Positions 13,978 through 54,334 of a stretch of 64,000 bases of DNA are shown piece after piece. The stretch's first letter is position 1. Every line of letters starts with the position of its first letter. The position numbers and the translations under genes are program-made. Under the pieces are notes generated by a model, which was not told the origin of the DNA, made no database searches, and saw nothing but the letters and a program-made list of their open reading frames with translations. The DNA comes from Anthoceros angustus (Eukaryota > Plantae > Anthocerotophyta): the NCBI GenBank assembly GCA_010909165.1, contig MU008184.1, positions 868,001 through 932,000 on the forward strand, in the 5' to 3' direction.

Positions 13978-14932
13978 AACGTCCCGCCCGCCAAAGCCAT
14001 CGCCTAAGCCGGGCAGATTGATGGCCTGGGCGGCCTGACATCCTGGGCCTTCCGCCACTGCTCCTCCCCCAAAGCTCCACGCAGCCATGGCCTCCCGCCC
14101 ATAGCCGGACAGGCAACCGCCTTCCTCCTCCAGAGCCCTTGCCTCCGCCCATCCTGAAGTGCCACTTCCTTCTCCAAGTGCTTTATCTGCACGGCCCAAG
14201 CCTCCAGCCTCTTTCAATCACGCAACTCCTGATCGCTTCTCCTCCTTCGCGTGGATCCTATCTGCTGGGTCTTGATTCTCCGTGAAATCTGCCAGGGACG
14301 CATCTTGGAGTTGCCAGGATGTCTTGTCACCTTCAGTCCATATGCTCTGCCTTCCTATGAGCACATCTATTTTGGGTCACCATTTCTTCTTCTTGGCCGA
14401 GCCGTACCGCCACTGCTCCTATTAGCCACAAGAGTGTGTCCCATTCTAAGATAGTCGGTAGTGATCCTGCCACCCACAATATGATCAGCCTCGCCCGGGT
14501 TTGGTGTTAGTTCCATGAGCCGCCGGGCTGTGTCCTGCAAGCATCCTTACCCTCCTCCGCCTCGCGCCCTCCTTCCAGTGAGGTCCTGCTTACTCCCCGC
14601 ACGCTCCTCGTGATCCAAGGGTCTTGGTCTGTCTCAATCTACCTCCCGCTGCCTTTCCTCCTCGATGCCAGGGACTCCGGCCTCCGCCGCCCACCGCCAT
14701 TAGTTCCACCATCCTCCTAGGTGGCTCTCACTTCCATGGGCCCTTCTCCCTGACCAGAGGCTAAAGAACCGCCCATGGCCAAGAAGCTAAAACTTCGCTT
14801 CTTCCACGGGGTGGTCACCGGGAGATGCCTGCTTAAGTCTGGTGGGGGCATCTCTGGTCGTCAAGGACCGCCATATCGCTGGAGTGAAGTCCCGGGACTG
14901 GGCACCAATGGGACCTCAAGTCCCTCGAGTGT

Positions 14933-28303: not shown

Positions 28304-29703
28304 TTTGTGGCCTATAAACTCACCTCCATTGTCTGATCGCAGGCACTTGACCCGATCGTCCGTCGCCTTTTGTACCATGGGAATCCACGGTTTTTATCAA
28401 AGGCCTCACTTTTCCTTTGAGTGGGAAGGTCCAAGTGTACCTGCTAAAGTCATATGTGAGTGACAAGTAATACTCAGCTCCTCCTAATGAAGGCACTTGC
28501 ATCTTTCCAGCAATGTCCATGTGGACCAGCCCTAGAACATCATTCGCTCTTGTAGCATTTTTGTTCTTAAAGGGCAGCTCCTTCTGTTTGGACAGGACAC
28601 ATGACTTGCATACAGGAAGATTTTTGAAGCATGAAGGTAACTTCTCTTTGTAGTAGTCACCTGCGGACATGAGGTCCAACTTGACCTTGTTCACATGTCC
28701 AAGTCTCACATGCCATAGGTTCGCTTGAGACCTAGATGTAGTAACATTTACTGCCGGATTATGATCTCCCACAGACAGCTGGTAGAGGTCATTAATCAGG
28801 AGTCCTTTTGCTAAGCACACATTAGGTTGTGATGGACTATACAAACAGCATGAGTCCTTCTCGAAGCGAAAAGCAAACTCTGACGTTTGTGTGAGGGCTC
28901 TGATTGACAGCAGGTTCTTTGACATAGCTGGAACATAAAGTACATCCAGCAGTTCCAACGTGAACCACCGGAAGCAGTACTGCTCCACTTCCATATACTC
29001 CCACGTGAATCTCCACATTACCGACCGTGGAGATTGCCGGTGGTGAATAGGTGGCGATTGTTACACACATGTGAAGTTGCCCCTGAGTCAATGAACCAGA
29101 GTGAACAGGTTTCTCTCGAAGTCAAGCGATCATTAAGATCGTCGCCTTATGAGCACTTTGAGAGCTTGACTTGTTGCCTTTTCAAAGAACATGCTTCGGT
29201 TTTGACTCCTTCTGAGCCTCACCAGCTTTCTTCTTACGACAATCTCGTTCCCAGTGGCCAGGCAGTTGGCACCAATTGCAGTTGCCTTGCCTTTTGGGAT
29301 TTCCAGACGAGGCTTTCTTCCCCTTATCCTTCCCCTTCCCAAAAGGTTTCTTAGAAGCAACTAACACCTTCTACCTCGACTTTTGCGAGCGAGAAGGTCG
29401 TGTTGCTCTTCTTGATAGAGAGCACCCACAAGCTCATTGAAAGTGAGTGTGGAGACACCACCCGGATGCACCAACGGACGTGTAAGGTACGTGTCGTGGA
29501 CACAAAGTTTTGATAGGACTGAGGGAGACTGGACAACAATTTGCTGTGATGTCTATATCGGATCTGGTTCCTCCCAGTATTATTGCTCATTGTCTTAATT
29601 AGCAGGCCGGAAATGTGAGTACCCATTGTGTCCCCATCCTTCATTCTGAGTCCATAGAAGTCGTTCCTTGCAGCAACAAGGGTTAAAATGTTCCTCACTT
29701 GAT
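28304..29703 (-). pseudogene. C0 gag C-terminal part, protease, GAG-pre-integrase and integrase start
   Basis: CNWCQLPGHWERDC knuckle; LWHVRLGHVN; HMDIAGKM; YDFSRYTWTFPL. Confidence 0.88.
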
Positions 29704-31734
29704 ACGTATGATGAGAATCATAGCTGTTCTAGGTAGCAAAACATAGCAAGCAGATAGTAGAAAGCTTTGCACAAAAAGAGTTGTATGCATTGATAATAGA
29801 AAGTACAAAGCCTTTATATAGGCTAAGTGGTTATAACCATAAGGTGGTTGTAACCATAAGTAGTTCTAACCTCTAAGTGGTTGTAACAACTAACTACTCA
29901 TTAAACTACCTAAAGCCCTAAGAACTAAATTAATTAATAGCCTTAGGTGCCCTAGTGAAGAGTGCCCTAAATAGGTCATATTTCATCACTCCCACTCACT
30001 ATGAACTAGGTGTGAAGAATGGCTTCAAAATGAGACTAAAAGGCTAGTTAGCTCCCACTAACTTGAAAGCTATCCACTAAGAAAACAATTAAAACTGGCT
30101 TAAGTTACATTTAAGCAGAATTTAATGTAATCAAAATTAATTACCAAAAACTTAATTAGGAAATGGTAAATTCCTAAACAAGGTAAAAGATAAAAGTAAA
30201 ACTTAAACTAGGTTAATCTTAAACCAAAGGTAAAAGTAAAACTTAAATGGGTAAGGCCCATATGATGCCGTCCGTATGCCCCTGGCATACGTTATGTACC
30301 CTCCCCTCATACGGTTTTATTCCTCCTCCCCTCGCCTCCCGCTCCCTCGCTCTCGCTCAAAGAAACTTGGCCATGGCCCTGAAAATCGTGGGGAAGGGCG
30401 CCTCGGAGGACGCGCCACCGGCGGGCGCCCGCGCGCCCGCCCATGTGCACACTGGCGTGCGGCGCCGATTAGAAGATGGCAGCCACTGCGGTGGAAGAAG
30501 AAGAGGAGTGCGGCCTGGGAGGGACGCGCCTCGAGGAGCAACGCCCCTCACAGGCGGTGCCACAGTGATCCTCCACGCCTAAATGGATTCCAACCTTTGT
30601 GGAGAGCCCACCACGTTTCCGGTGGTAGGAAGTGGTAGCTCGTGAGGTTGAAGTCACCGGAGAGAGGTGGAATTTGTTCCCGGTGGAGGTCGCCAGATGT
30701 GAGTGCTGCGGAGTGTCTCACCCAAGCCGGAGATTAAAGATCTTGCCCCATGTCTTGTCTCAATTTGTTGAAGTGCCCGCTGCTAATCCCAAGCCAACAC
30801 TCCAAATGCGGCAAGCCGTCACCAGTTGTGTGCGGATGAGAGATCGTCGAGGAAGATTCAAAGCTCTTGTGGAGAAGAAATCGCGAGATTGTTCTCTCGA
30901 TACAAGTGCCTTGGAAGAATCTTCATTGAAGGGCTTCCTCGATGATGAAGGAGGCTGAAATCTCAAGTAAAGCATGTGTGTAATAAGGCATTCCCCTGTC
31001 ATGAAGGGAGGCACCTTGGGCGATGGATGCCCCCCTTTTTTGAGGAGAGGCACCTAGTTGTAAGCCCGTTTGTGGGCATCTTCAAATGACCATTTTCCAG
31101 TTCAAAAATATTAATTGTGATGAATTTTCTGATACTATTTTCGCAGATTTATGTATGGAAAATTATGGAAAAAGGAAAATGAAAATGAAAATGAAGAAAA
31201 TGAGAAAATGAAAAGGTAGACATGCTTTTGTGACTCTAAAAGGTGTTCTAACTTATTTTCTCTTGCTAAAACTTGCCCATTTTATTAGATTTCTTTTGCC
31301 CCGAAAAGACATAGAATAGGAAACATAGATTGGAAGCCCGGCATATATCCCAAGGGTGATGATGTGAAGCTCATCTATATAATCACTAATATGAAAGGGG
31401 GAGACGTACCACCATGCTCCTATGTTTGCCAGGAAACTAAGATACACATGATACGGGTTATGTATGCTGTCTGTGAAGAATTTCCGGACATATGATCCAT
31501 GTCTATCGTAAGTATTCCTGAGGCTAAGAAAATATGGAAAAGTTTTAATTAGCAAAATATTATTTAATATTTTAATATTATTTTCTAGAGCACCTCAACT
31601 ATGTATGAAGGAGAGGATCAGGCCTATGTTAAGATTGAGGATGATTGTTCAAGACTTAGAATAGAATATTGGACTAGTTTTTAAGGTTATCTTAAGTAGA
31701 CCAATTTTTAAGGATGAACTATAGGTGGAGGCTT

Positions 31735-34138: not shown

Positions 34139-34142
34139 AAAT

Positions 34143-34172
34143 AACATGGTAATTCTGTAAAGAGGTTTATAT
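34143..34172 (+). repeat. left terminal inverted repeat
   Basis: AACATGGTAATTCTGTAAAGAGGTTTATAT. Confidence 0.92.
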
Positions 34173-34460
34173 AACCCCTTCCTGTTGCGTGAGAACCCTT
34201 TGGAAAATCACTCGGTATCTAAATCACGCCAAAGCCATCACGGTCTCGACAATGGACCATTCTTGGCCCCTGACTAAGTCATGAACAACACAATTGAGGC
34301 ATACACGGTAGCGACAGCAGTGCGGCGGGCTGCGGCGCTGGATGAAGCCATGAATGATGGAAGAGGGACGTTTTAAATGTGCCATAAAATGGCACCGATA
34401 GACACATGGCATAATGAAGTTTATATGGAATCCTAATACATTGGATCCGGTTACTGCGGG

Positions 34461-35460
34461 CTATTCGGGTCTCAAGCGGGCCTGAGCGAGCGAATCTAAA
34501 ACTACGCTAGGTTTCGTATCGCTCCAGTTCTTAATCCATGTCATTCTCACCCAAAGCGTTGTCATCGTTGTTAACCTCCGCTTGGACAGACGCGCGTGGG
34601 AGGTTGCCATATGGTATCCGGCGTTTGTCCTTCCTCCAACAATTAGCCCGTTACGGTCTTCATCCTCCGCACTCAAAGAAACAACTTGGGCCTTTGAACA
34701 ATCCTTTTCACTTATACAAACCTCCTTTGCCCAATCCCAAGGGCCTGCGATGGGGCTCGAAGGTAAGCTCTTCTTCAGCATCCGGGAGAACCTCGTATCC
34801 GTGGATGCGCTGGGGGATGTATCCAGCACACCGTAAGTCTGCTTCGATGGCGATACAGTTTCTTCCATACAGCAAGGCTGCTAATACCGTTGTGCCACTT
34901 CCGGAGCATGCGTCCACCACCCAGTCTCCTTCTTTTGAGAAGGTCTTGATCAATTTCATCATCAGCCCAAGAGGCCTTTGGTATGGGCATACCACCAACT
35001 TGTCATGGGACAAGTACACCTTCTTTACCACGTCATGTCATGACGGACCTCCCATTGTTAAAAGTGCCATGCATGGCATTCGCATCATCGGAGCTCGATC
35101 CTTTGAACACCCATCTTCAAGCCCCATCCGACACATACTCCACGCTTTCAACCGCCCCTATCATTGCTCATGTTAGTTTTATCCCACACGAAGACACCAG
35201 CCACCCTTCTTACACCACTGCGCATCGATTCCCGTCTTGTGGGCTTCCTCCACTCCATGCATGACAATCATGCGAAGTCTTCGCTTGTAGTTTTCTCATG
35301 AAAACTTGAAAATCGTACTCAACATAGTGGCATCCATCCGCTTGTCCATAGGCCCAATATCAAAGCCTCCGGGCACATCCATGACTAATGTGGTGTACCT
35401 CCTCACCAAGGTAGCCCCGCATCTCCAAAATATCTCGCTTCTCCACTTGGTAATGAACCT
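34461..35460 (-). pseudogene. beta-class N6-adenine/N4-cytosine DNA methyltransferase domain (N6_N4_Mtase-like), frameshifted
   Basis: Order is the catalytic motif IV-like LVMDVPGG (35365-35379), GVFVWDK (35178-35189), CPYQRPLGLMMKLIKTFSKEGDWVV, SAM-binding DACSGSGTT (34888-34914), then AALLYGRNCIAIEAD. This parallels the canonical beta-class tail HPTQKP..L..LI..S..GD.VLDPF.GSGTT..AA...GR...G.E.D. Confidence 0.87.
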
Positions 35461-35787
35461 CCTTCTCACCGAACAGAAAATGTGCAGCCCTTCATGAAGA
35501 TCTCAGACACGCTGCTCGTCTTCCAAACTCTTCCAATTATTGATCTCGAAAATGAAATTCTTAAAGTCCTCCGGCATTTTCGCAAGTTGTCTATATCCTT
35601 CAATTCTTTGCAGGCAAAACGAGTAAGTGCATATATGCAGAAACAAACATTATGCACCCGTAGATCTCAGAGGCTTGAGGCGCCCGCCTCAAGCCCCTCG
35701 AGTTCTATGGAGTGGATCTGAGATGGGCGCCGGCCGCCTGTAAGGCACCCGTCCCCACATCACATGTGGAAGTGGCCTCGGCCAGCG

Positions 35788-35853
35788 CTGCAAGAACGTT
35801 AGGGTTTGTAACGACATATGAGAGAATTAGAAACGATGGGTAGTATGGCACAC
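35788..35853 (-). other. probable 66-bp spliceosomal intron in the cargo gene
   Basis: GAAG|GTGTGC donor, CTAAC branch-like site and TTCTTGCAG acceptor. Confidence 0.55.
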
Positions 35854-36338
35854 CTTCCAAATGCCGTCTGAACCGAGCTATCATTTCACCGAATGCAAAG
35901 GATATTCCACCTAACCTCTTCGAATGATGAGCAGCCCAAGTGTTTTACCATAGCCACTTGTATAACATGAAACTTCTTCCGTAAGGTAATCTCCTCATCC
36001 ATACCTTTTAGGTCGAGCACACTCAACACCTTCTCGTCTACGATGAGTATCCGACCGCACTCTCCAGTGGAATCCTTGAACGATTTCCACGGCTTTGCTA
36101 GCATATCCTTCTTCACGTAAACAGGTGTCAACAACGAGCCTCCTCTTGTACCTTCCGTTGCCTTTGCCCTTCTTACTTGTTAGAACATTTTTTTTCCCAG
36201 CAATTCTCCAGCCTCCCATTTTGAAAATATTCGATCCACGTTGTCCCAAACCTTCCCCTCTGTTCGCAATGCATAAGATGTGGGTCCGATTGTCCACCTT
36301 ATTCGCTTGTAAACATCGCCTTCCGACCTCCGTCGTCC

Positions 36339-36850
36339 TCAATCAAGCCCAATACACGGTATAGGTTGAATTTCCAATTCATGGTCATCGGACATCATCT
36401 CGCCTGCAAGTAGTTCGCCCTCAAGTACCGACCGCTCAATGAAGGACATCTTCTTCCTTTGTCGACATCGACAGTGGTCCGCTGCACATCGCATTTCCGC
36501 CACCGCCCCACAAGACATACATGAGCTTCCACATATTGGAAGCGTGTTTTCCTCGAGATATATCGCCAAATGTTTCATGGCTGCAAAGGTATGGTTCCCA
36601 CCAAGAACGCCCATAACATATTTCTTCGCCCGAACCTTTCCACCCAACTTCGAGGTTGTCACACTCGTCGGGTCGATCATGCAAAGGAGAGGCAACACGC
36701 CCTCCTCAATCCTTCCCTTCGATATTACACGAGCCAAATAATTTGCCCATGCCTCGTCCACTCTCCTTATCGCGCATCTGGTGTAATATGGGATGCTGGT
36801 TTCAAATTCTCCAGCTTCACTAATACTGTTTCCTGAACCACCTTCTTGGA
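36339..36850 (-). pseudogene. ParB/Sulfiredoxin-like domain of the same cargo gene
   Basis: IRRVDEAWANYLARVI, PLLCMIDP, VLGGNHTFAAMKHL (GGNH in the position of the ParB DGxHR motif), then after a frameshift FQYVEAHV and MSFIER. Confidence 0.65.
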
Positions 36851-37278
36851 GTAAGCTGAGTCCCGAATTCGTGTCAAAGGGTCTGCATCTCGGATAGCAT
36901 CCTCCAGCCTTTCCTCGTCTGTACGAACATGAACAGTGGCAATGTTTTCCGGATGGTCCCCTTTTCCTCCATCTCTTCGACTTCTTCTTCCCACTACCTG
37001 CCGCCACATCGCCATCGCCGTCCGTCACCGGGCAGAGAGACATCCGTAGGTGCTCTTCCGCTTTCCCACCTCGCTCCACCACATCACCGCCTCCTCTTCG
37101 CCCCTCGGCGGGCCACCGGCCCGCCTCCTCCTTCTTCAACATGCGAATGGCACCGGGCGCCGGCCGCCGCGCCTAGTCCATCTCCCCAACGGAAATCGGA
37201 CAAACCGGTTTGGGTTTGGGGTCATCAGTCTTCCCCATCCGCTTGGGTCGGCCGGCCGGCGCCCGATTGTCATCCGTG

Positions 37279-37570
37279 ATCGATGCGACGGTAGGAACAA
37301 GGTCCGCAAAGTTCATGATGTCCTCTGCATCCCTATCCTCGTCTTGGTCGCTGACCCTTCTCCATCCGAATGACCCAAAGACCCTGGGATCGGGCCATCA
37401 TCCTCGCTGGATGGTCCCGTTCACTATCCGCATCGATGCGGACGGTAGGAACAAGGTCGCAAAGTTCATGATGTCCATCCCTATCCTCGTCTTGGTCTGA
37501 CCCTTCTCCATCTGAATGACCCACATCTCGGATCGGGCCATCATCCTCGTCGGATGGTCCGATTCACTAT
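37279..37570. repeat. about 150-bp tandem duplication encoding an acidic linker of the cargo protein
   Basis: Two copies of ACGGTAGGAACAAGGTC...CCTATCCTCGTCTTGGTC...GATCGGGCCATCATCCTCG. Confidence 0.85.
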
Positions 37571-37589
37571 CTCTTGTGCCGCTATCTCT

Positions 37590-37850
37590 GCATCATCCTC
37601 ATTCCTGCTGCTTCTCTCGCTCTCCTCATAGACAATACGCACTGTGCTACAACAAGATCCGACCTTTCCACACAACAATGATAAGAGCTCTTCCTACTGG
37701 GTGGAAACAAAGAAACATGATGCAAATCGAGGAGAAAGCACATCAAGTGACACAAACCGAACAAAACAAAATTCACAGTCCATGGCATATCTGCTTACAC
37801 TCGGTTGCCGCATTGCTTCAAATACCTCGACAAGCTCGGGAGGACCACAT
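37590..37850 (-). pseudogene. possible PHD/RING-like Cys/His cluster in the cargo N-terminus
   Basis: Joining two frames gives DCEFCFVRF.HLMC...PPSRKSSYHCC, i.e. C-x2-C-x4/5-H-x2-C...C spacing. Confidence 0.35.
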
Positions 37851-39315
37851 TTCTTAGCATGAAACCCAAGGACGCTGAGCTCATACGCCCTATACATTTG
37901 AGGGTCTTGAATCACTGCGTCAAACTCCTGAGGCCTTGTTGTGCAAAACAACGTGAACACCGGGTTCTTCTCGTCCATGTCCAGGGTCGCCCATACTACC
38001 CATCCAGCCCTCGCTCTTTGGTTAGGCAATGCTCCCCTGATAACCCATGATCCACAATTTCAACAGTGGAGTCCAGAAAACGTTTTCATCCTCTGGCTCT
38101 GCATCCTGTGTCACCATCCAGTCTTTCTCAAGAACAGTGACAGGATCCAGCTGAGCATTCAGACGCCGAATGATCACAGCCTCCTCGTAGGTGAAGGGCG
38201 AAGGAATCGGCACCGCCGCCGAGGCTTTGTGACTTCTCCACCCAGCTCCCCTCTTTCCACTGCTGGCCTCGCAGACGCTCAGCGGATTTCGCTTGCCCGC
38301 CGATGCATGCCCACCCTTGGCTTGCTCACCACCTCGATCACGCGATGGCTGCCTTTCCCAAGTCCTCTCGCACTAGCCGCCGCTACTCCCCGCCTGGATT
38401 TCTTCGCTTGGGAGGAGGTCACCGGCACGCCGCATCCGCCAAATCCTTCTTGCTCCGTCCGCTTGCCATCGCTCACCGCACAGCCCGCCCGTAACGAAAA
38501 CAAAGTTGCATCACTCACAAATTGGGCTTGAATGGAAATTGTGGAGTTCTCGCCGCAGGATGCCTTGTGCACCGTTGACACGGAACACGCTCTTTGCAAA
38601 GGCGACACCGTAGGTCCCTCCTTCACACGCCCGCCACACACCGATGGAGGCCTCTCTGACCGTGGAGCGTTCCGAGTGCGCAACAAAGTTGCGTGGAACA
38701 CCGCTACCAAAAGGACTCTTAACCTGGACGATTAGGTTACCGCTCACCACGTTAACCAAAGTTAGAAACCCCGATGTCGTGTGAAAGGCTGGTAGTTAAG
38801 TGGACCTTATTCTCCTATGCATGTATTTATGACACCTGACTTATCCATCGATTGCGGCGTTATTCTTATCCGCGTGGCGACCGCGATATCCGCGCCTCAT
38901 TGGATTTCCTCGCCGTTATGTGCAATGAAGTCGCGTGCAGGCGTGGGTACTAAGTCGGCTCGACGCAAACCACACTTACCAACCATTTCGCTTGCAAGGA
39001 GTCTACCCGTGACTTGTCGGCGACTTGACTACGGCAATGTTGCGCGACACACACGATATATGGAGGACGTGAGTGGAAAGTGCACCCGATGTGTCCGATT
39101 CATTTGTGCTATCACCATGTTAACCCGAAATGCACATTTGCACGCAGCATCGGCTTATGTAGAAGAACCCTCCCGATACTTGAGGCCCGAAGGACTTAAA
39201 AAGGGCGAGGAGGCTTGATCTTTGAACCCTCCGCCACCTCGCCTCGCCATCCTCCGCAAGGTTAGTGTGTTAAGGGGCTTGTGAAGAGTCCGTTATAGCA
39301 CATTGTGGGAATCGA

Positions 39316-42300
39316 GTGGATGTCACTTGTGCGAAAGACGCCGACGTCGGAATTGTCTTCGCCAAGTATGCCGCATGGTGTTCCGATGACGCCAAGAAAT
39401 CGAACTTGTATGCAGCCATAGGCAGCCTCCAAATGAGGAGAGAGTTGGGGTTGAAGGACGCTGATGTTCGCATGATTGCCCGCCGTGGCTTGTTCATGGC
39501 GATGGGTATGGGAAGGCAGAACATACCTGGTCCCGAGGAGCTAGACGGTCGTCCGATAGAGGTCCCATCGAGCGACGACTTCCAATCACCTCCGGAGGAT
39601 GATGTGCAAAGATCGTTTCACCAAACCTTTGAGCGAGACATTGCAGACGCAAAGGACTCGTCTGCGTTATGTCAAGACGGCAGCCCTCCGGTGAGGAGAG
39701 TTGGGGTTGAAGGGGCTGATGTTCGCATGATTGCCGTGGCTTGTTCATGGCGATGGGTATGGGTAGGCAAAACATACCGGTCCCGAGGAGCTAGGCGGTC
39801 GTCCGATAGAGGTCCCATCGAGCGACGACTTTCACCTCCGGAGGATGATGTGCAAAGATCGTTTCACCCGAAACCTTTGAGCGAGACATTGCAGGGCGTC
39901 AAAGGACTCGTCTGCGTTATGTCGGCGAGCGGCAGCCGCGTGTCGTTGAGGAAGAGTGAAGTGGACATTGTGACGGTGACTCGGAAACCTTGTTGCAATC
40001 GAGTAAATTGACGAAAGAAAGATTTCGAGCGGTATAGATTCATTAGAATGTGCAGACAAGAGCAGGAGACATTCCTTCAGTCTCTAGTCCATCGCGACAG
40101 GGACCAATGATAAAGGAAAAGTTGTCACTCATGTTATGGGGAGTGTTCCGATACGATGTTGTCTGAAGGCTTTCAGAAGGGTTTATTGTGTGGGACACAT
40201 CAGGTATGAGGAGTTGAAGGCTAGAGTTCTTCAGAACTCACCGTGGGATGGTTTCAGAACAAACCCCATACATGAGCCTCTCGCGCTAGGGCCATAGCTT
40301 GGATGGATGACTTTTATGTACATGGTGAGAGGCTCCCAAATGTGGAGGTTTTCAATCTTCCCGACACGTACACAAAATTAGAAATATGGTTGCTATACAA
40401 ACGAGAGTGCGAAAGGTCGTGGCTCGATATGTCACCTACGCGTGGTTCTTAAAGCTATGGAAATGCAACTACAGTGAAGATCCCAAAGTCAAACCGGTTC
40501 TCGACATGCTGGTGCGGATTGAAGACAACTATACGGAACTCAACACGAAGGTCGATCAAGGTACCGGGCACTCTTGTTCCTCCGCATCTGTCCTTTCTAA
40601 CCTTTTTGTGTGAACTACTGCGGTTTGTCGTGGCCGTCTGGTCCTAGGTGTCGGTGCCGTCTTGGAGGTTTGGGCCATCTTGGATGGAGGTTTGGTTAAG
40701 CGGTCGGCGCCCCTTATATCACAGAGTGGCGCCGGCAGCCGCCCCTCTCTGCTTCACGAGGGGCGTCCGACCGCTGGATGGTTAGTTGTGCACTCCCTCC
40801 CCTCCCCGCCTCCTCCTCCTCTACAGGGCCGGCCCCCACCCAATGTCATTACCAGTGGCCGCCGGCACCACCCTTGTTAGCAGTGAGGGGTGGCCCGGCC
40901 CTATGTCCCGCTGGCCACGGAAACCCTTGGGTGGAACTCCATACCGACCTTGGCTCCCACCTACACCAAAATCCGCCCTCATGTGAAGTATATGTGTAAT
41001 GATAAATGAGAGGGCATGACTAGAGTGTTTGCAAAGAATGGATTTTGAAACCGACCGTGAAGTTCTTGTTTTATATGATGAAATATCAGTCGCTATGACG
41101 ACATCGGGCCGCATTTAGGAACACGGATGGCCAAACACAGAGCAAAAGTTACGAGATCCGCATAAGTACATATTACATCTATAGATGGGATGGACCAAGA
41201 AAAGCGAGGTACCACACTTTTGAGGTGGTCAAGAACTGGATGAGGAGTCCCGCATCTCTCCACGTAGTTGGGTGTATGATTCACAACTACACGTATAAAC
41301 GAGGGCCTTCTTGCATTACGCAAATTTGAGAAATGACGCCAATTTTGACTATCATCATACGGATGTGATACACAACTACGAGGAGTATCAAGGTTTTATA
41401 CTTGCAATTGGACAACACTTGTCGGAGAACAAGAATCAACTTCTTTTGCATATCCGAACATGTTAGTGGATATGGGAACTTTTGAGAAAGTAAAGGTGGG
41501 GTTTCTTCTCGTTGGACATACTCATGATCAAATTGACCAAATGTTTTCATGTTTTCAAAGAGCTTGAAACAGGAAGCTCATACTCTCCGCATTGGCGGCA
41601 ATTTTGAAAGAGGCGTACACTCCAACACGGTGAGGTGAAGGTATTAACGGAGGTTCCAGGACTTCCGCTCCTATGTTTGGCCGTTCGACAAGGGGATGGA
41701 CGCCAAGCATACGAGTCAAGGTGCGAAATTGAACAACTGTCATTCCAAAGACCATCAAAATTACAAGAGAAGAAAACGACCGTGGCCTTGTGTGATCATT
41801 AGAAGCAAACAATATTCGACATCGCCACAATGGGAAGCGGAAGCCGGTTTGGAGTTTTTGAAGTTTGTCCCATCCACGACGTAATACACGACATCCCTTC
41901 GTGCCGTGATAAGAAAGGCACATCGTGGTTATCCCCAACCGAGGTGTGGCTCACTTGAAGGAGGGCCTCTCGCGCTTAGACCATATGTCACCGCAGAGGA
42001 ATATAAATGGTGGGAAGAATTTTGGGTGGACCAAGAGGAGATCGTTATTGTGGAGAATAATATAGGGCTCGCACTCCAAGACGCATGGAAGTGGTTTCGC
42101 GATGAAGTTGAAGAAACCGAGGTTCTTCACGTGCACGATGAGGCGTTGCTAGAGGAGGCTTTACTCGGGGACCTTCCCCAACGGATATGTACCTTGGTGC
42201 ATATCAAACCGTTGTTAGACAAGAACAAGAAACCGCGGTTGAATGGTGACATTTCGGAAATAAGGAAAGACATGTTCATTGCGTCCACACCACCGATGCA

Positions 42301-42328
42301 ACAGCCGTTTTGGATTGGCGGTCATTGA
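39316..42328 (+). pseudogene. DDE/D transposase, Sola-like, frameshifted, with a probable intron at 40561-41089
   Basis: KPCCNR; RAIAWMDDF..GERLPN..FNLP; VKIPKSNRFSTC; SIDGMDQ; LYLQLDN..ENKN; FLLVGHTHDQIDQMFS. Confidence 0.85.
39421..39937. repeat. about 255-bp tandem duplication in the transposase 5' part
   Basis: Two copies of GAGAGTTGGGGTTGAAGG...CCGGAGGATGATGTGCAAAGATCGTTTCACC...; GGCAGCC at the junctions. Confidence 0.88.
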
Positions 42329-42466
42329 TGTTCACTTAGATGCACCGATCCTCACTTTGTCGCTCATTGGTACATGACCGGATGCGTATGAAGGAAGGTA
42401 TGTTGAAGAATTTATAATCCGACATGAAGGGACCCAGTGTGAATCGGGAAAAAGGAGGAAAGCTAA

Positions 42467-45400
42467 TTTGCACAAAACGCATAAAAGGTTTTTGTGAACA
42501 AAACGGTGATCATATATTATGGTTTCAACTTGAATGCTCGCAAACATTTATATCTGTGGACAAGAAGGCGATCGGACTAAAATTAAATGAATTGCGCCCA
42601 TAAATGCCTAGCCAAAGTGGCCCGGAAGATAGTGAAGATAGTGGTGGTGATGCGAGCCTTGCGATGATACCAATTCGTAAGACGACTGGAGTTCATGAAC
42701 ATCTGCCAAGATGTTTTGTCTTATGTGGACACGTTTTTCTTCCCTTCCTCTCAATAAGTTTCAATAGATTCTCCAAATTCTATTGTCCGTGGAAGGCTAT
42801 TTTTCCCACCGCACTTAACGAAAACCGTTGTCTTCCGCCAAGTTCTCATTATTATGCACATAAAGACCGGTGGAAACCAGCCTTCCTAAGCATAGCGACA
42901 AATCCATACGACGAGACATCGATGAAGATGGTGTTCATGTGCAAGACGCATTGCAGCGTTAACCAAACCAACGTTGTTTGTATGTCCATAGGCCTCCTCA
43001 CCGACTGTCTCGATGTATGACTTCTTTGCATGTTACGGTTCACCCCAGCAAGTGGGGAACACTATTTCTCTTCCGTGTACAATGGGGCCACAATTACACA
43101 CGGTCAAAGGGTGTCCATGGACGAGTGAAGAGGCCGGCCGCGCCCGTAAACAAAGAGCATTAGGATTGTGTTTTCCGAAAACAGGGCCCGACATTGACCT
43201 CGACCATTGTACTAACGGCGAGTTGTACTTAATGGAAAAGGACCCGCGCACCATGTTTTTCGCTGAGTTGCGGTTTTGCTCATCGGTCTTCATCATCACC
43301 GCACAAAACGGTCGTCCCATCCGGGTCCGAAATGGAGCCAAATGGATGTATGAGGGGTTATCAAAACCCTTTGCCTCCTACATCGATACACGAAATTTGT
43401 GTGCAGCAGATGAACACCCTATTTTCGAGGCATTTTGGACCACACGATTCAAAACCCTAAATGGAGACCCATTGGAAACCCTCATTGCCGAATAAAAGGC
43501 AGAAAACCCCCATGGTGCATATTAACCTCCTTACAGAATTACCATGTTAAATCTATGAGATGTAAACTCTCCACCGTTGTCGGAACGTAAGGTCTTGAGT
43601 TTGTGATCTGTAAGCCTTTTTGCCCATGCCATGTAATCCTTGAAAAACTGATAAGTTTCACTCTTTTGGGTGAGGATGTAGGAGAGGCAGAAACGGAATA
43701 GTCAGAAAAGTTAAGAAATATCTACTACCACTAAAGGAGGTGTAGAGAGGGTCCACAAATCAGGTACTATCTCTAAAGGTGACTTGGCCCTTTGAGGAGA
43801 TGGATTTTTGAAAGGTTCCCGTGACGTTTTGTGAGGACACGGGTTTCGCACCAATCTAAGTTGTGAACCTTGGAGAGGCAGGTGTTCTATCTGAGTTGTC
43901 TCTAGACATTTGGAGTAACCGACTATTAGGATGACCTAATCTACAATGCGAGCATCGTGTGTGTTGGTTGCAGAATGTTGGGAGGCTACATTGGCCGGAA
44001 TGTGGCTCCTACTTTGTGACAATCTATAGAGTCCATCTTCTAAGATGCCGGTCACGAGATATTGTGTGTTCTATTCTTGAGGTAGGAAAGAACAACTATC
44101 GGCATATAAAAGGACACGCATGTTGTGTTCTTTGCAAAGACTAGCGGTGACACTAGGTTTTGCACAAAACGCATAAAAGGTTTTTGTGAACAAACGGTGA
44201 TCATATATTATGGTTTCAACTTGAATGCTCGCAAACATTTATATCTGTGGACAAGAAGGCGATCGGACTAAAATTAAATGAATTGCGCCCATAAATGCCT
44301 AGCCAAAGTGGCCCGGAAGATAGTGAAGATAGTGGTGGTGATGCGAGCCTTGCGATGATACCAATTCGTAAGACGACTGGAGTTCATGAACATCTGCCAA
44401 GATGTTTTGTCTTATGTGGACACGTTTTTCTTCCCTTCCTCTCAATAAGTTTCAATAGATTCTCCAAATTCTATTGTCCGTGGAAGGCTATTTTTCCCAC
44501 CGCACTTAACGAAAACCGTTGTCTTCCGCCAAGTTCTCATTATTATGCACATAAAGACCAGCGTGGAAACCAGCCTTCCTAAGCATAGCGACAAATCCAT
44601 ACGACGAGACATCGATGAAGATGGTGTTCATGTGCAAGACGCATTGCAGCGTTAACCAAACCAACGTTGTTTGTATGTCCATAGGCCTCCTCACCGACTG
44701 TCTCGATGTATGACTTCTGCGTTACGGTTCACCCCAGCAAGTGGGGAACACTATTTCTCTTCCGTGTACAATGGGGCCACAATTACACACGGTCAAAGGG
44801 TGTCCATGGACGAGTGAAGAGGCCGGCCGCGCCCGTAAACAAAGAGCATTAGGATTGTGTTTTCCGAAAACAGGGCCCGACATTGACCCTCGACCATTGT
44901 ACTAACGGCGAGTTGTACTTAATGGAAAAGGACCCGCGCACCATGTTTTTCGCTGAGTTGCGGTTTTGCTCATCGGTCTTCATCATCACACAAACTCGTC
45001 CCATCCGGGTCCGAAATGGAGCCAAATGGATGTATGAGGGGTTATCAAAACCCTTTGCCTCCTACATCGATACACGAAATTTGTGCAGATGAACACCCTA
45101 TTTTCGAGGCATTTTGGACCACGATTCAAAACCCTAAATGGAGACCCATTGGAAACCCTCATTGCCGAATAAAAGGCGTAAAACCCCATGGTGCATATTA
45201 ACCTCCTCATGCACTACCATGTTAAATCTATGAGATGTAAACTCTCCACCGTTGGCGGAACGTAAGGTCTTGAGTTTGTGATCTGTAAGTTTTTGCCCAT
45301 GCCATGTAATCCTTGAAAACGATAAGTTTCACTCTTTTGGGTGAGGATGTAGGAGAGGCGTAAACGGAATAGTCAGAAAAGTTAAGAAATATCTACTACC

Positions 45401-45832
45401 ACTAAAGGAGGTGTAGAGAGGGTCCACAAATCAGGTACTATCTCTAAAGGTGACTTGGCCCTTTGAGGAGATGGATTTTTGAAAGGTTCCCGTGACGCTG
45501 AGGTGTGGTTTCGCACCAATCTAAGTTGTGAACCTTGGAGAGGCAGGTGTTCTACATAGTTGTCTCTAGACATTTGGAGTAACTTCGACTATTAGGATGA
45601 CCTAATCTACAATGCCGAGCATCGTGTGTTGCGTAATGTTGGGAGGCTACATTGACGGAATGTGTGGCTTCGACTTTAACTGACAATCTATAGAGTCCAG
45701 CTTCTAAGATGCCAGTGCAGATATTGTGTGTTCTATTCTTAAGGTAGGAAAGAGAACAGCTATCGGCATATAAAAGGACCTGCATGTTGTGTTCTTTGCA
45801 AAGACTAGCGGCAGACACTAGGTTTTTGCACA
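42467..45832. repeat. about 1.7-kb tandem duplication spanning the transposon right end and the adjacent C2 integrase
   Basis: Units 42467-44158 and 44159-45832; TTTGCACA at all three breakpoints; ORFs 42604 and 44295 start identically. Confidence 0.92.
43519..43548 (-). repeat. right terminal inverted repeat
   Basis: Reverse complement reads AACATGGTAATTCTGTAAGGAGGTTAATAT. Confidence 0.92.
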
Positions 45833-47295: not shown

Positions 47296-50200
47296 TGTGG
47301 AAAATCCTTATGCACCTAGCTAAGTTAGGAAGGCAAAGGAAAGCAAGAGATAATGAATGACGAAGTATATTCAATGAATAATCAAGAGTAAAGTACAAGC
47401 CTTTAAATAGGCTAGGTGGTTGGGTGGTTACAACAACAAGTTTGTTGTAACCATAAGTTATTCAACCATAAGTTGTTGCAACCATAAGTTGTTGCAACTA
47501 ATATAACAACTAACTACCTAAAGCCCTAGGCATAAATAAATGATGAGTCATAACCTAATTACGTAAACCTAAATAAGCTATGGGCATTTAACCCACGATG
47601 GTTATATATTTAACACTCCCACTTAACCTCGACGGGTTAAATCTGAAAATCTACTTTAAATAAAGTCTTATCCAGAAAATTCTCGGTCATATCAGCGTTT
47701 CGGGTTCCCGTTGCCTTGTACACCATGAGCGCGGAGATGAACGGAAGCAAGTGAAGCAAGTGACAAGGAGGTGAGCTGATTTCCATGCCCCAGGATTAGG
47801 TAGGTGTGTGGCTTCATCCACTAGATGCATGGAGAATTAGCTGTGAAGGACAAGAATTAGGACAAGAGCTTGTGAAGACATCACAGTAGGGAGACTAAGT
47901 TTGTTACAGAGCATGTGGGTCTGACCACAATGTAAGCTACCATGTAGTAAAATATTTGGTGAAATCCATGAGGCCCAAGCCCTCTACATGTGTCTGATGT
48001 TTGTGTTTAGGTAGAGGCTTAGTGAGGACATCGGTATTCTGGATGGATGTATACAGGATTGATGATCCCCTAGCCTTGACGTCCCTCACATAATGGTGTG
48101 CAATTTCTATATGCTTCGTCCTAGCGTGAAACCTAGGACGATCAACAAGGGCTAAGGCAGATTGGTTATCACAATACAGTACAGTAGGTGATACCTGCTC
48201 ACAGTGAACTGAGGAGAGGAAGGAACGTGCTCACTCAGCTTCTTTCGCAGCATCTGTAAGGCATTTGTATTCAGCTTCAGTACTTGAAAGGGCGATGCTG
48301 CTTTGTTTCTTACAACTCCATGTGACAGCTGCAGAGGATAAGAAGAACACATATACACCTTGTGCAAGTGGGGTGAAGCTCACCATGTCCCACCACTCTC
48401 GACAGGACATTCAGGATTTTCCCTCACCGTCATTGATTGGCGGTTCCATTTGTGAGCAATTGGACGGCGATATCACATATCGCTAGCACACTTACAGTTC
48501 TGGAATGCCAGCGTAATCACGGGTGCCATCAAGCGGTATTTCGTTATTTGAAGGAACACATCATTATGGCTTATGCTACAAGAGAACGGGGAGTACCTTT
48601 CGGCCTTTGGCCATGTTGAGAATCGATGGGGATACACGCAAGAGCTTGTATATTGGCGGGATGTGCATTGGTCATATTAGCGTTGAAGGATTTACAAATA
48701 TATTTGTGGTGTATGATCACGAGCCCTCTTCACGTATCCTCAACACTTGAATTCCAAGACAAAATTTCGGTTCCCCAACATCCGTCATTTCAAACTCTCG
48801 AGTTCTTCTATCTACTCGTGCTAGATTGTGTGTCATTGCCGGAAGATTGCATCATCAACATAAGCGGCAAGCGGTACATAGGAGGTGCCATCATCATAGA
48901 TATAAGCGGAGGGATCAGCAGGCTCTGGCGAAAGCCCGGCCCCTTGATCCCTTGCATTCCAACGCTCTGCGCTTTGTTTAAGACCATATATGCATTTGAT
49001 AAGTCGACATACATAGTCTCGATGATCGGGATCTTCGTATCCTTCGGCATTCCATACGCTCTTCCTCCAAAATTCCATGCAAGAAGGCCGTTTCACATCC
49101 ATCTGCTGCAGCTCAAAATCACGCTCAGCAGCTAAAGCAAGCATAAGACGGATTGATTGAGAGCGTACCACCGGAGAGAAGGTCTCTTGAAAGTCCAGAC
49201 CAGGTATTTGCGTGAACCCACGTGCACAGAGCCTTGCTTTGTATCTTGCTATGTTGCCATTAGCATCTAATTTATGCTTAAATACCCATTTGCATGTTAT
49301 GGGTTTACGCCCCTTTGGTCGAGGAACAAATTTAATAGCCTCATTCTGTATGAGGCTATTAAATTCATCATCCACTGCGTACTTCCACTTATCCCTATCT
49401 GGACCTGAACATGCTTCTTTGAGGGTGACAGTTCGAGGGAGGGATAGCAAGGAGGCATTGTGTGGGCAGTGTGCAAACTCCCACTGACTTGCGAAAGTCG
49501 ATGGATGTGTAAGGGGGCTCTATCCATTCAGATGGAGGACGATGCACACGGGTGGATCGACGCACCGGTTGAGGAGCATTCTCTTCAGGTAAATGGTCAT
49601 TCTCATCAGCAGAATCATAGGCATGAGAAGAACTGTCAGGTTCAGACTCTGAGTCTACATGATTTTCTGGGTTCTCAGGTTGTTCATGATCTGAATTTTC
49701 AGCATCGGCAGCAGGTGCATCTACTTGTGCATCAGCAATGGAGGATCAAGATCTGGTTGGTCGGGGCTCTGGAATTGGTGGGTTCTGGTGAGCGGCGGGA
49801 TGTACATGTTGCAAGGGTGGAATATCTGGAGCAGTATCTCCATCAACATCATCAGGGTAGTCAGAATGTTCCTCTGCGAATGTCAAGTTACCATCATGTT
49901 GAGCAGGCAAAACGCTGTCCCCTGTGATTGGTGGCTCCAATGTCTCCAGAAAGGTCACACTCCTTGCTACAGTTGGCTGTAAGGTGTCTGCATCAATGAG
50001 TTTGTAGGCTTTAGCAATTTCGCTGTACCCAACAAATACTAACCCCTTTGAACGATTGTCGAGTTTACGCCTTCTCTCAGCAGGTATGTATGCATAAGCT
50101 TTCGAACCAAAGATGCGAAGATGCATGATACTTGGTTTTCTCTTCCAGAATCTCTCAAAAGGCGTACAGTCAGGGACTGAATGTGATGGAAGTCTGTTGA

Positions 50201-53200
50201 GTATATATGTAGCTGTAACTACAGCTTCTGCCCAATATGGAGAAGGTAATCCTGACCACAAGAGCATTGATCTCGTCATTCCCATCAATGTTTGATTCTT
50301 TCGTTCTGCGACCCCATTTTGCTGTTGGGTATATGGAACGATAAGCTGATGAATAATGCCTTGGCCGGTCAGGAACTCCGTGAAGGCATGGCTGACAAAT
50401 TCACCACCGTTGTCAGTCCTGAAAAGCTTTAGCAAACGACCAGTTTGGCGCTGCACCATGGTTAACCAATCCTTGAAGATAGAAAATGTATCACTCTTAT
50501 GATGCATAGGGTATGTCCACGTATACCGGCTATAGTCGTCAGTTAATGTCAAATAATAGGTTGCACCACCTAGTGACCGAGTTTGTAGCACGATATGTCG
50601 AATGCACTAAGTCGAGGGGCGATGTTGACTGTGTGCAGTGCTCTTGGAAAGGGAGTCTCGTTGCTTGGCAAGAGTGCAAACTTCACAAATGGGGAGCTCA
50701 TTAAAACAACGTGGAAGAGGCTCACGATAGTAGTCCCGCTTAGAGATATCAATGAGTTTAGTTACATTAGCATGGCCAAGGCGTGCATGCCCTGCCGGCC
50801 CGCTGTTGTGAAAGCCAATGTAGTAGAAAATGCTTCATCGGAGGAGAAAATGTCTAGACGGTACAATTCAATCTACAAAGGCTTTGAAGATACAAATGTT
50901 TGGAGCACTACGTCTAGAGAAACAACAAGCGTCATCCGAGGCAAGGACTAGATCCTTCATCTTCATCAATTTGCTAAGTGACATCAAATTCTTAGCCATC
51001 TTTGGTACATACAAGAGGCGTCGGGAAGAACTAACACACTATCGTCGTGTAGGGAAACTTAGACTCCTCTACCAAGGATAAGACTACTCCCACACTCTCA
51101 TCACCCAAGTATACCTTTTCGATTCTTGATAGTGTCAAAGCGGTAAAGAGAGATGCATCCCGGAGATATGGGCCGTGGCCCCTGAGTCCAAAACCACCAA
51201 TCCACCTCACTCGTCAAAGTGTTATTAAGACAAGCGAGAATCTTCACTCGCTTGCAATTTGTGGATGTTGTTGAGGACTGTCTATCTTGAGCTTGTTGTG
51301 TGGTCATGTGTGCGGAGGGTCGAGAAAAAGCCCGTTGAGGCTCGCCACTTTCTTCTTAGGCATTCCGTGCCCAATGACCGAGTACCACACCAATTGCATG
51401 TACCTTCTTGCTTCGAGTAGAGGAAGATGAACCGGTGTTGCCGGTGTGTAAGAACCGGGCCAAGACGTTGATTATTTCTCCCCTTCCTCCGCCTCGCCTC
51501 TAGTTGCTGAAAAACTTTGTCGGTTTTGTGTTGCTTTTGCTGCCCTCTCATAAGTCGTGTCATTCTTCTTGGTATAGGGCTCCCACAACAGCCTCCAGCG
51601 AAGGGGTTGGAGTTCCAGTGAAGGGACTGCCCAGGAAGAGCAATGGGCATATTCTGAGTAGTGACAAAAGTTTGATAGCTTGCGGGAAGTGACCCATTGT
51701 GCCGCTGCGTCGACAGTCATAGGACTCCCAAGTGCATTGAGTTGGGATCGCAAGCGTCGAAACTTGCTAACATGATGTGACACGGACTCACCATCTCTCA
51801 TGCGCAGTCGCAAAGTTCAAGGATTGCACAAAAGGTCATCATGTTCAACCTTGTAAGTATTTGATAATTGGTCCCATATATCCTTGGCTTTAGTCAAGTA
51901 TTCGGTTTCAGGAATAAGGTCAGCATCCAAGCCGTTAACCAAAAGAGCAATGGCGATGCTATTGAAGCCATCCCACTTGTCCTTGTCAGCTTGAGTAACA
52001 TTTGCAGCAGTTCCTTGTGCACGAGGGACACCGGGGTCCGGATAGGAGCCATCAACAACACTCCAAACGCCACGAGCTACCAAGGTAGTCTTCATACGGA
52101 CCTTCCAAATGTCAAATCTCGTCCCATTGAAGCGGTCTTTGTCCTTGATATCAGATGTGAATGAAGGTGTTGCCATGGCGGTTGAATGTCAAGTGAGCAG
52201 AACTATAGTAGGACTGCTACAAGAGAGATGTCTACGAGTCAATAGAAAATGTGTGGGAGATTCATATATAGGTAACTGCCTAAATGTGAAGGGTGCCCTA
52301 AAAAATATAAAGGGTGCCCTAAAATCCAAAAAACTAACTTCAAATCTGAAACGTGCCCTAAAAACGAAGGGTGCCCTAAAATCCAAAAAAACTATCTTAA
52401 AATCTGAAACGTGCCCTAAAAACGAAGGGTGCCCTAAAAATTAATAAGAAAATTCATGTGAATTTTCTGGTGGCAGGGGAGGTGGTTATAATAACTGTTT
52501 TTTTTTTTATAACTACCTATTGGCAACAAAGAAATTGGGCAGCAAAGAATGCATGCAAAGAATTGCAGATTTGCAGCAAATCTCAAGCAAAAAACAAGCA
52601 ATTTCTTGCTCCAGCGTGATAGAAGTGGGCTCCCAAGCAATGCGCACCAACGCAATCATCCCCTCCGCAGTGTCAAAGAACAATATCATCAGGGCTTTGC
52701 CCTGATTGGCCCAATTTTTGCATTTTCTTCAAATCTGATTGTTGCATAAATAATTGGATCAAATGTTGGGTTGCAGATACACCATCACTTATATCCTTGG
52801 TGCATTGATTAATGCTATGCTGCAATCTCTTCTCCATATCATGCAAGGCTGTGAGAAAGAGATCTTGTCTTGCAATCAATTGAGAAATTCGAACATCAAG
52901 TCTTCCATAGTGATAGTTGATCAATTTTGATAGTGATTCACTAGAGTCTGGGACATAATCATCATTTTCTTCATCGATATTGCCTCCCTCTCGATCTCTC
53001 ACCTGATTACGATCGCTGCGTTCTTGTGCTTGCCTCCCCGCGCGCGGATGCGATGCGATATTCGTCAAAATATTGGCTCCATGGTCCGTTGCAAGTTGGA
53101 GGAACCGTTGTACACAGAGTTGCGTGGGAAAACCTCACGCATAAGTGGTGATGCACGGAGTCCCTCCTGAGGCATTGCACAAAGAACAAAAATCGTGAAG

Positions 53201-53540
53201 TGGCATCGGGCTCGATACCATGTGGAAAATCCTTATGCACCTAGCTAAGTTAGGAAGGCAAAGGAAAGCAAGAGATAATGAATGACGAAGTATATTCAAT
53301 GAATAATCAAGAGTAAAGTACAAGCCTTTAAATAGGCTAGGTGGTTGGGTGGTTACAACAACAAGTTTGTTGTAACCATAAGTTGTTCAACCATAAGTTG
53401 TTGCAACCATAAGTTGTTGCAACTAATATAACAACTAACTACCTAAAGCCCTAGGCATAAATAAATGATGAGTCATAACCTAATTACGTAAACCTAAATA
53501 AGCTATGGGCATTTAACCCGCGATGGTTATATATTTAACA
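47296..53540 (-). mobile_element. Ty1/copia element C3, full length and youngest
   Basis: 320-bp LTRs at 47296-47615 and 53221-53540 differing at 2 sites; TSD GCGTT; PBS TGGTATCGAGCCC 53208-53220; PPT from 47616; gag 51817-52176, integrase 49746-50591, RT 48833-49450. Confidence 0.96.
52289..52440. repeat. GTGCCCTAAA-motif array with about 61-bp higher-order repeat in the C3 leader
   Basis: Six GTGCCCTAAA motifs. Confidence 0.85.
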
Positions 53541-54334
53541 GCGTTGTTGTGAACCTGTATTGGAGACAGAAGAAAGAGGACCTGCATGTAGATTTGGGAT
53601 GTGATCAAGAGCGAGTTCTATTGCTTTCACTTGACTTAAACTAAAGATAGTAAGCAGGTGTCTTCTAGCAATTTCTATTTGCCTCCCTTGATCTTCTACT
53701 TTGATTAGAATAGAGCCAATGAAGTTAGCAATAAGTATGGAATCTCCTACTATCTGGCTATACTTCCTAGCAATTCTAATCTTTGCATTCCTGTATTCTA
53801 TATCTTGTTTTGCAGCCTTAATCTTCTTCCAATAACCTTGCTTGTAGGATTAAAAGAATCCATCGCATTGGAGCAAGGATTGGATGCACGAGTGTGCATT
53901 ATTGAAGATTAGGGAACTGCATGAAGCATCAATCTATGACATGCAATCTGAAGAATCTATACATCTTCTAAAAAGAAATGAAGAAGAAGATGAAGAAGAA
54001 GTGTAGATCGCATGTCAAGTTGCCCAATGCAAATGGAGAGCAGCAATGCTCGATACCATGATGAGAATCATAGCTCTAGGTAGCAAAACATAGCGGATAG
54101 TAGAAAGCTTTGCAAAAAGAGTTGTATGCATTGATAATAGAAAGTACAAAGCCTTTATATAGGCTAAGTGGTTACAACCATAAGGTGGTTGTAACCATAA
54201 GTAGTTCTAACCTCTAAGTGGTTGTAACAACTAACTACTCAATAAACTACCTAAAGCCCTAAGAACTAAATTAATTAATAGTCTTAGGTGTCCTAGTGAA
54301 GAGTGCCCTAAATAGGTCATATTTCATCAACGTA

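Follow-up and report, generated by a model that had tools for sequence, protein, structure and literature searches.

The 64-kb window of Anthoceros angustus contig MU008184.1 that was analysed here carries, at positions 34143-43548, a 9.4-kb element whose two ends are terminal inverted repeats (TIRs); it is likely that this element is one copy, decayed and probably non-autonomous, of a multi-copy family of Sola1-type DNA transposons. It combines the remnant of a transposase gene on the forward strand with a cargo gene on the reverse strand, the C-terminus of which belongs to the N6_N4_Mtase family of DNA methyltransferases. In the assembly, stop codons and frameshifts disrupt both genes, and the copy is non-functional.

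The limits of the element are defined by the strongest inverted repeat within the 33.5-44.2 kb region of the window, a pair of 31-nt arms (34142-34172 and 43519-43549) that are 94% complementary and lie 9346 nt apart. The left TIR (34143-34172, forward strand) and the right TIR (43519-43548, reverse strand), both found by the inverted-repeat search, agree over the outer 23 nt except for 1 mismatch, and this outer pattern occurs at only these two places in the whole window, with 0.00 matches expected in shuffled sequences. Read directly from the sequence, identical AAAT copies flank the element on the left (34139-34142) and on the right (43549-43552) and form a 4-bp target-site duplication (TSD). 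A TSD of the AWWT type is a hallmark of Sola1 (PMC3845634), and both the AAAT on either side and the bounding TIRs agree with this assignment. The original prediction, which was made from the DNA letters alone, had described a TIR-bounded cut-and-paste unit with a 4-bp AWWT-type TSD and had drawn the same limits with the same AAAT, and in both respects it is confirmed.

That the cargo is shared by other copies is indicated by short contigs from a DNA survey run, which cover parts of the methylase, of a candidate ParB-like piece and of a further piece upstream of it (see below) at word depths of 28-160. Over 37803-38073, in the upstream cargo piece, the word depth is 28-58, and the likeness of the survey contigs to the present copy ranges from <90% to >99%. 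Since contigs of such high depth carry parts of the cargo, the latter is a component of a repeat family, which speaks against a gene captured only once.

The methyltransferase part of the cargo gene was recognised at 34711-35037 on the reverse strand (Pfam PF01555, E-value 5.6e-13, above the gathering score), where it corresponds to profile positions 163-212 of 221 and contains the S-adenosylmethionine (AdoMet)-binding region with the motifs X, I and II ('DACSGSGTT'). As is expected of an N6_N4_Mtase, motif X lies upstream of AdoMet motif I ('CSGSGTT'). The recognised part makes up the last ~70 residues of the cargo gene, with the stop codon ~40 codons after the AdoMet-binding region, and since the AdoMet motifs come last in the frame, the catalytic motif must be located upstream, i.e. 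in the order of the beta class. The same piece matches CcrM in NCBIfam, phrog_67 (E-value 5e-16) and MTase_II in PADLOC (E-value 4e-14), reaches an Atlas language-model score of 0.97, finds 2zie, CcrM, DpnA, M.RsrI and M.MboIIA among the structures in the PDB and shares 40-48% identity over about 70 residues with about a thousand phage methylase genes. In all, five independent libraries pick out this C-terminal piece. The claim of a divergently oriented beta-class methyltransferase gene, for which an N6_N4_Mtase profile search had been named as a check, hence stands with regard to the C-terminus on the opposite strand, which that search does match; it does not stand with regard to an entire enzyme, as the catalytic half is undetectable and the gene is broken.

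A motif scan in the three-frame view yielded 'LVMDVPGGFD' (35368-35379, reverse strand) as the sole candidate for the catalytic motif IV. It lies within the stretch 35299-35502, in frame with motif I and 159 codons upstream of it, and has no aromatic residue; the phage enzymes closest to this gene carry 'CDLPYGTT' in the corresponding place. No (D/S/N)PP(Y/F/W/H) motif occurs in the cargo gene, a result that speaks for this decayed copy and not for the family, and six in-frame stops interrupt the methylase frame between 35502 and 34711. In N4-cytosine enzymes, motif IV typically begins with S. The emphasis that the original prediction had placed on N4-methylcytosine (4mC) is not borne out by these data, as the recognisable part mainly resembles N6-adenine enzymes (CcrM, DpnA, RsrI, MboIIA) and the motif IV candidate starts with D. 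Given this D, and given that adenine enzymes make up nearly all of the closest recognisable relatives, the product of the family would, judging by its nearest relatives, more likely be N6-methyladenine (6mA) than 4mC. A word-indexed search for eukaryotic relatives of the methylase piece, the length window of which leaves out full-length fusions, gave 0 matches, and none of eukaryotic type were found in a scan of viral contigs.

The transposase gene is preserved as a remnant at 40276-42325 on the forward strand, identified by a match to the Pfam family DUF7869 and by blocks shared with metagenome contigs. Its catalytic core (41166-41624) contains the motifs IDGMDQ (41181), LQLDN (41402) and GHTHDQIDQ (41514), all of which were found in the motif scan but in differing reading frames. 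The piece 41349-41564 matches DUF7869 with an E-value of 1.2e-13 (profile positions 77-116), and the LQLDN piece matches the adjoining positions 59-76 in a co-linear manner (E-value 0.057). In eight short relatives with PF25273 from metagenome and Logan assemblies the D/D/D blocks are conserved, and when these relatives are aligned, 'LQLDNT.RENKNQ....Y..MLVE...F.KVKVGFLLVGHTHDQIDQMFS' emerges as the pattern of the family. Residues 3-107 of one of these relatives, which is continuous (P0004), map to 41258-41434, 41272-41448 and 41448-41561 of the element, that is to three frames with internal stops. The transposase is therefore dead as assembled, and of the DDE/D transposase that had been claimed on the forward strand, the three motifs and the DUF7869 match remain, in different frames and as a remnant only.

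Two metagenome contigs of 23-25 kb (L005 and L006; metagenome 3300072920 of the Joint Genome Institute) carry DUF7869 transposase relatives whose catalytic core is 75-77% identical in nucleotides. As L005 shares the co-linear blocks 40276-40449 and 41648-41881 with the element, the remnant spans at least 40276-41881, and it probably reaches to about 42325. L005 also carries copia-type open reading frames, which shows that eukaryotic transposon DNA is present in the metagenome assembly. No methylase was seen on L005 and L006; what the four contigs L005-L008 have in common with the element are the transposase blocks only, and they are silent on whether the cargo travels together with the transposase.

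The element resides in a Ty1/copia retrotransposon (29698-54329, reverse strand), in which gag_pre-integrs, rve, SH3_retrovirus and RVT_2 were matched in copia order by Pfam, in addition to Pol_BBD. The long terminal repeats (LTRs) of this host, found by self-BLAST at 29698-29988 and 54049-54329, are 2.5% apart in substitutions. When the element and one AAAT were removed and the flanks joined in silico, the integrase frame of the copia crossed the junction, with LRSDNGGEFTSHRF directly before and AEFCRAEG directly after it. In line with this, the flanking piece 43549-43701 (reverse strand, 51 amino acids) corresponds to positions 35-83 of Pfam rve and ends exactly at the junction. It had been predicted that removal of the element restores the host integrase, and the read-through together with the rve match supports this; the copia has stop codons of its own away from the junction. 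The element was thus inserted into the integrase core of the copia after the copia itself had been inserted. Overall, the copia LTR pair encloses 24 kb with three later events, namely the DNA transposon, a tandem duplication and a young LTR element; the last of these, at 47296-53540, is nested in the same copia and has 320-bp LTRs that are 99.4% identical.

The tandem duplication at the right junction, which the original prediction had missed, is the only new detail at this locus. Its second copy (44159-45832, forward strand) aligns in self-BLAST to 42467-44166 with 95.2% identity over 1714 nt, and the alignment of the two copies contains 2.65% substitutions (44) and 52 gap columns. The 1.7-kb unit takes in 1.08 kb from the right side of the element with its TIR, and further the AAAT as well as 0.62 kb of copia flank, and the TIR of the second copy is mutated by at least 4 changes. 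The boundaries of the duplication have the 8-bp microhomology TTTGCACA in common, which points to a microhomology-mediated duplication after the insertion of the element and not to a second insertion.

The remaining cargo region extends upstream of the methylase on the reverse strand. The six-frame reading gave a 277-codon open stretch at 36342-37172, within which the candidate for a ParB/Srx-like domain ('RRVDEAW...LPLLCM...VLGGNHTFAAMKHL', 36540-36809) was placed by motif-level resemblance. In particular, VLGGNHTFAAMKHL (36570-36625) has what we take by eye to be the look of the N-terminal box of ParB proteins (of the G-x-H-R type, following a beta-strand), without the arginine. Language-model leads for the candidate piece, which are weak by the calibration of the tool, were DUF3723 (0.92), ParB_N (0.88) and DUF6551 (0.87). 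For 36342-36899 (reverse strand) the nearest entries by language model were basidiomycete clusters along with DUF3723 (0.92), a conserved accessory gene of the fungal Starship elements. On the basis of this model-derived lead, one could speculate that accessory proteins of a ParB-like kind might be a repeated feature of large transposons in eukaryotes. Further upstream, the six-frame list contains an open piece at 37697-38059 (reverse strand) with no family match.

Several results weigh against the reading of the locus as a Sola1-type transposon with a ParB-methyltransferase cargo. With regard to the cargo gene, the catalytic half of the methylase was detected neither by Pfam nor, even with filters off, by a profile built from four phage methylases. 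Run against the three cargo frames read through their stops (set to X), the latter profile aligned with its positions 166-233 of 239 only, and the stretch 35299-35502 around the motif IV candidate was not statistically recognisable as a methylase by Pfam or, at full sensitivity, by the phage-methylase profile. For the ParB candidate, no ParB match was obtained in Pfam (even at an E-value of 10 and with sub-pieces), NCBIfam, PHROGs, PADLOC or the PDB; the 277-amino-acid piece gave 0 matches in an exhaustive HMMER search against 1.84 billion representatives and likewise 0 in the word-indexed search, and tblastn of the candidate piece against phages returned chance matches only. Two single-sequence AlphaFold models of the piece reached predicted local distance difference test values of 36 and 44, which is too low for a fold search. 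Neither do the phage comparators offer a parallel, as 0 N-terminal ParB domains were present among five phage methylase genes (four of them scanned with Pfam), and the two neighbouring genes that were scanned are not ParB either. The ParB/Srx-like domain of the original prediction is consequently not upheld for this copy, in which profiles, including the ParB profile it had proposed as a check, homologue searches and folds all drew a blank; its presence in the family is plausible from the literature. With regard to the superfamily, the only profile match of the transposase is that to DUF7869, and the assignment to Sola1 does not come from a transposase match. Finally, some of the frameshifts could be assembly errors, since 52 gap columns separate the two copies of the duplication and many 1-nt indels set the survey contigs apart from this copy.

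From these points, different alternatives to our interpretation can be derived. The element could lie outside Sola1 and represent another or still unnamed DDD/E superfamily with 4-bp duplications, in which case 'Sola-like' would be a mislabel. The only profile match of the transposase is to a domain of unknown function, DUF7869, for which a literature search gave no paper naming the domain and hence no published link to Sola, and as of 2017 Sola transposases had matched no Pfam family (PMC5751038). We nevertheless regard this alternative as quite unlikely, since AAAT agrees with the AWWT preference of Sola1 (PMC3845634) and since the only published element with an opposite-strand accessory gene of this kind is classed as Sola-1 (PMC12477816). 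From our point of view a Sola-type classification is reasonable, its grounds being the TSD, the arrangement of the genes and published work and not a profile match of the transposase. One could also imagine that the methylase is a fragment that was captured once (Pack-type capture) and is peculiar to this copy, in agreement with the single copy in this window and with the metagenome relatives of the transposase on L005 and L006, which show no methylase; given that the high-depth survey contigs cover both the methylase and the upstream cargo regions and that a precedent has been published (Sola1-1_Ec32; PMC12477816), we attach hardly any weight to this idea.

The poor state of the two genes invites a different explanation, namely that much of the breakage is assembly error and that the copy is less dead than it appears. 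Divergence since insertion is no more than a few percent, but the damage to both genes is heavy, which means that either the copy was already defective before it moved and was mobilised in trans, or the indel load is in part assembly error. Mobilisation in trans has been proposed for many giant elements by the authors of the Ectocarpus study (PMC12477816). Whereas the 52 gap columns against 44 substitutions between the duplication copies and the 1-nt indels of the survey contigs would suit an assembly problem, the six in-frame stops of the methylase frame go back to substitutions and not to indels, as do those within the core of the transposase, and the indels of the duplication are not confined to homopolymers. 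That errors of assembly account for much of the decay thus appears rather unlikely. A further possibility concerns the cargo protein, which could be a pseudo-enzyme throughout the family, one that has kept AdoMet and DNA binding, has lost methyl transfer and serves as a DNA-binding or regulatory factor. This would fit with the lack of a (D/S)PP(Y/F/W) motif in any frame, with DVPG without an aromatic residue as the sole candidate, and with the N-terminal two thirds of the methylase domain being unrecognisable. The motif of a decayed copy can, however, not speak for the family, and the closest phage enzymes use a non-canonical D-L-P-Y, so that D-x-P variants can belong to active enzymes; we therefore consider a family-wide pseudo-enzyme a serious, though less likely, alternative. 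Conversely, it is a very improbable combination that the intact members encode an active ParB-guided amino-methyltransferase with a D-x-P motif, mark their own copies with 6mA or 4mC and also constitute the stock from which domesticated enzymes of the DN4MT1 type were drawn.

As the locus shows, the history of the element began with a cut-and-paste insertion into the integrase core of the copia, by which AAAT was duplicated, and continued with the 1.7-kb tandem duplication across the right junction at the 8-bp microhomology and with decay. At the level of the family, the accessory protein may bind the DNA of its own element via the N-terminal domain and then modify it. Alternatively, because motif IV is non-canonical, it might act as a DNA-binding factor without catalysis. 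The present copy cannot mark anything since both of its genes are broken as assembled, and the earlier suggestion that the element marks its own copies or targets accordingly does not apply to it.

The closest described system is Sola1-1_Ec32 from Ectocarpus (Dinatale et al., Genome Biol 2025, PMC12477816), a Sola-1 element of 21.5 kb with an intact accessory protein of 1104 amino acids. In Sola1-1_Ec32, accessory gene and transposase are on opposite strands, and the accessory gene codes for a ParB-like domain together with a methyltransferase predicted to form 4mC or 6mA; the authors of the study propose that the protein binds and modifies its own transposon (PMC12477816). The opposite-strand accessory gene with a methylase C-terminus is confirmed in the present element as well, and ParB is undetected in this copy. 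Compared with Sola1-1_Ec32, to which it is likened here by description, the element is shorter (9.4 kb), broken, devoid of a canonical motif IV and hosted by an organism that is not a brown alga. The original prediction had known of no description of such a combination; Sola1-1_Ec32 is already catalogued (PMC12477816), an outcome that the prediction itself had named as counting against it. The locus is hence one more, dead example of a published pairing, with no working enzyme and no new principle.

A similar association is found in the giant Plavaka (EnSpm/CACTA) transposons of red algae, which encode an N6-adenine methylase (PAG2) and a protein with a ParB-like N-terminal domain (PAG3) (Bostrychia preprint, 10.1101/2025.02.11.637652). 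As giant transposons with accessory genes for DNA modification they resemble the present case, and the same idea of self-binding and self-modification has been put forward for them. They differ in that they belong to another superfamily and in that ParB and methylase are parts of two different proteins, accompanied by SET and 2OG-oxygenase partners. In addition, tandem inverted-repeat arrays adjoin PAG3 in Plavaka, and none were found in the element studied here. More specifically, parS-like short palindromic arrays were not found between its two genes, where only two plain tandem repeats occur. These are an internal repeat of about 146-150 bp x 2 at 37272-37571 (direct repeats, 86% in self-BLAST) and, at 39421-39937 between the cargo and the transposase gene, a 250-bp unit present 1.9 times (Tandem Repeats Finder, 92% matches, score 815; also found by self-BLAST).

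The beta-class N6_N4 enzymes of phages and bacteria (CcrM, DpnA, M.RsrI, M.MboIIA and phage orphan methylases) are alike in the region of motifs X, I and II. Unlike them, the gene described here is part of a eukaryotic transposon and has a long N-terminal extension and an unrecognisable catalytic motif. Fusions of ParB and a helix-turn-helix domain to Dam-type methylases, derived from phage ParB-terminase loci, have been described from chlorophytes and chytrids (Iyer, Zhang, Aravind 2016, PMC4738411). They are likewise eukaryotic combinations of a ParB-type domain with a bacterial-type adenine methylase, but belong to the Dam/DpnM group and not to N6_N4_Mtase. Marchantia DN4MT1 and bdelloid N4CMT are further bacterial-type amino-methyltransferases in eukaryotes, but these are host genes with shown 4mC activity, and no link to a transposon or to ParB is described in the paper on these enzymes.

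Outside the copia, the GC-rich part of the window contains two nested pairs of inverted repeats, one with 69-nt arms (11655-11723 and 17382-17450) and one with 82-nt arms (13243-13324 and 15613-15694), and the nested pairs at 11655-17450 may mark other TIR elements. A 69-74-nt unit recurs at 2316-2613 in a tandem-like manner, in three to four copies with a spacing of 90-96 nt.

Overall, the value of the locus is that of a data point for a census of this transposon family, and what it documents is that such copies still moved once a copia had been inserted. The idea that transposons modify themselves and seed host systems has already been published, with a brown alga as well as red and green algae as the cases. 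In this context, transposons with a DNA-modifying enzyme of their own could place epigenetic marks on themselves or escape such marks, and could seed the methylation systems of their hosts.

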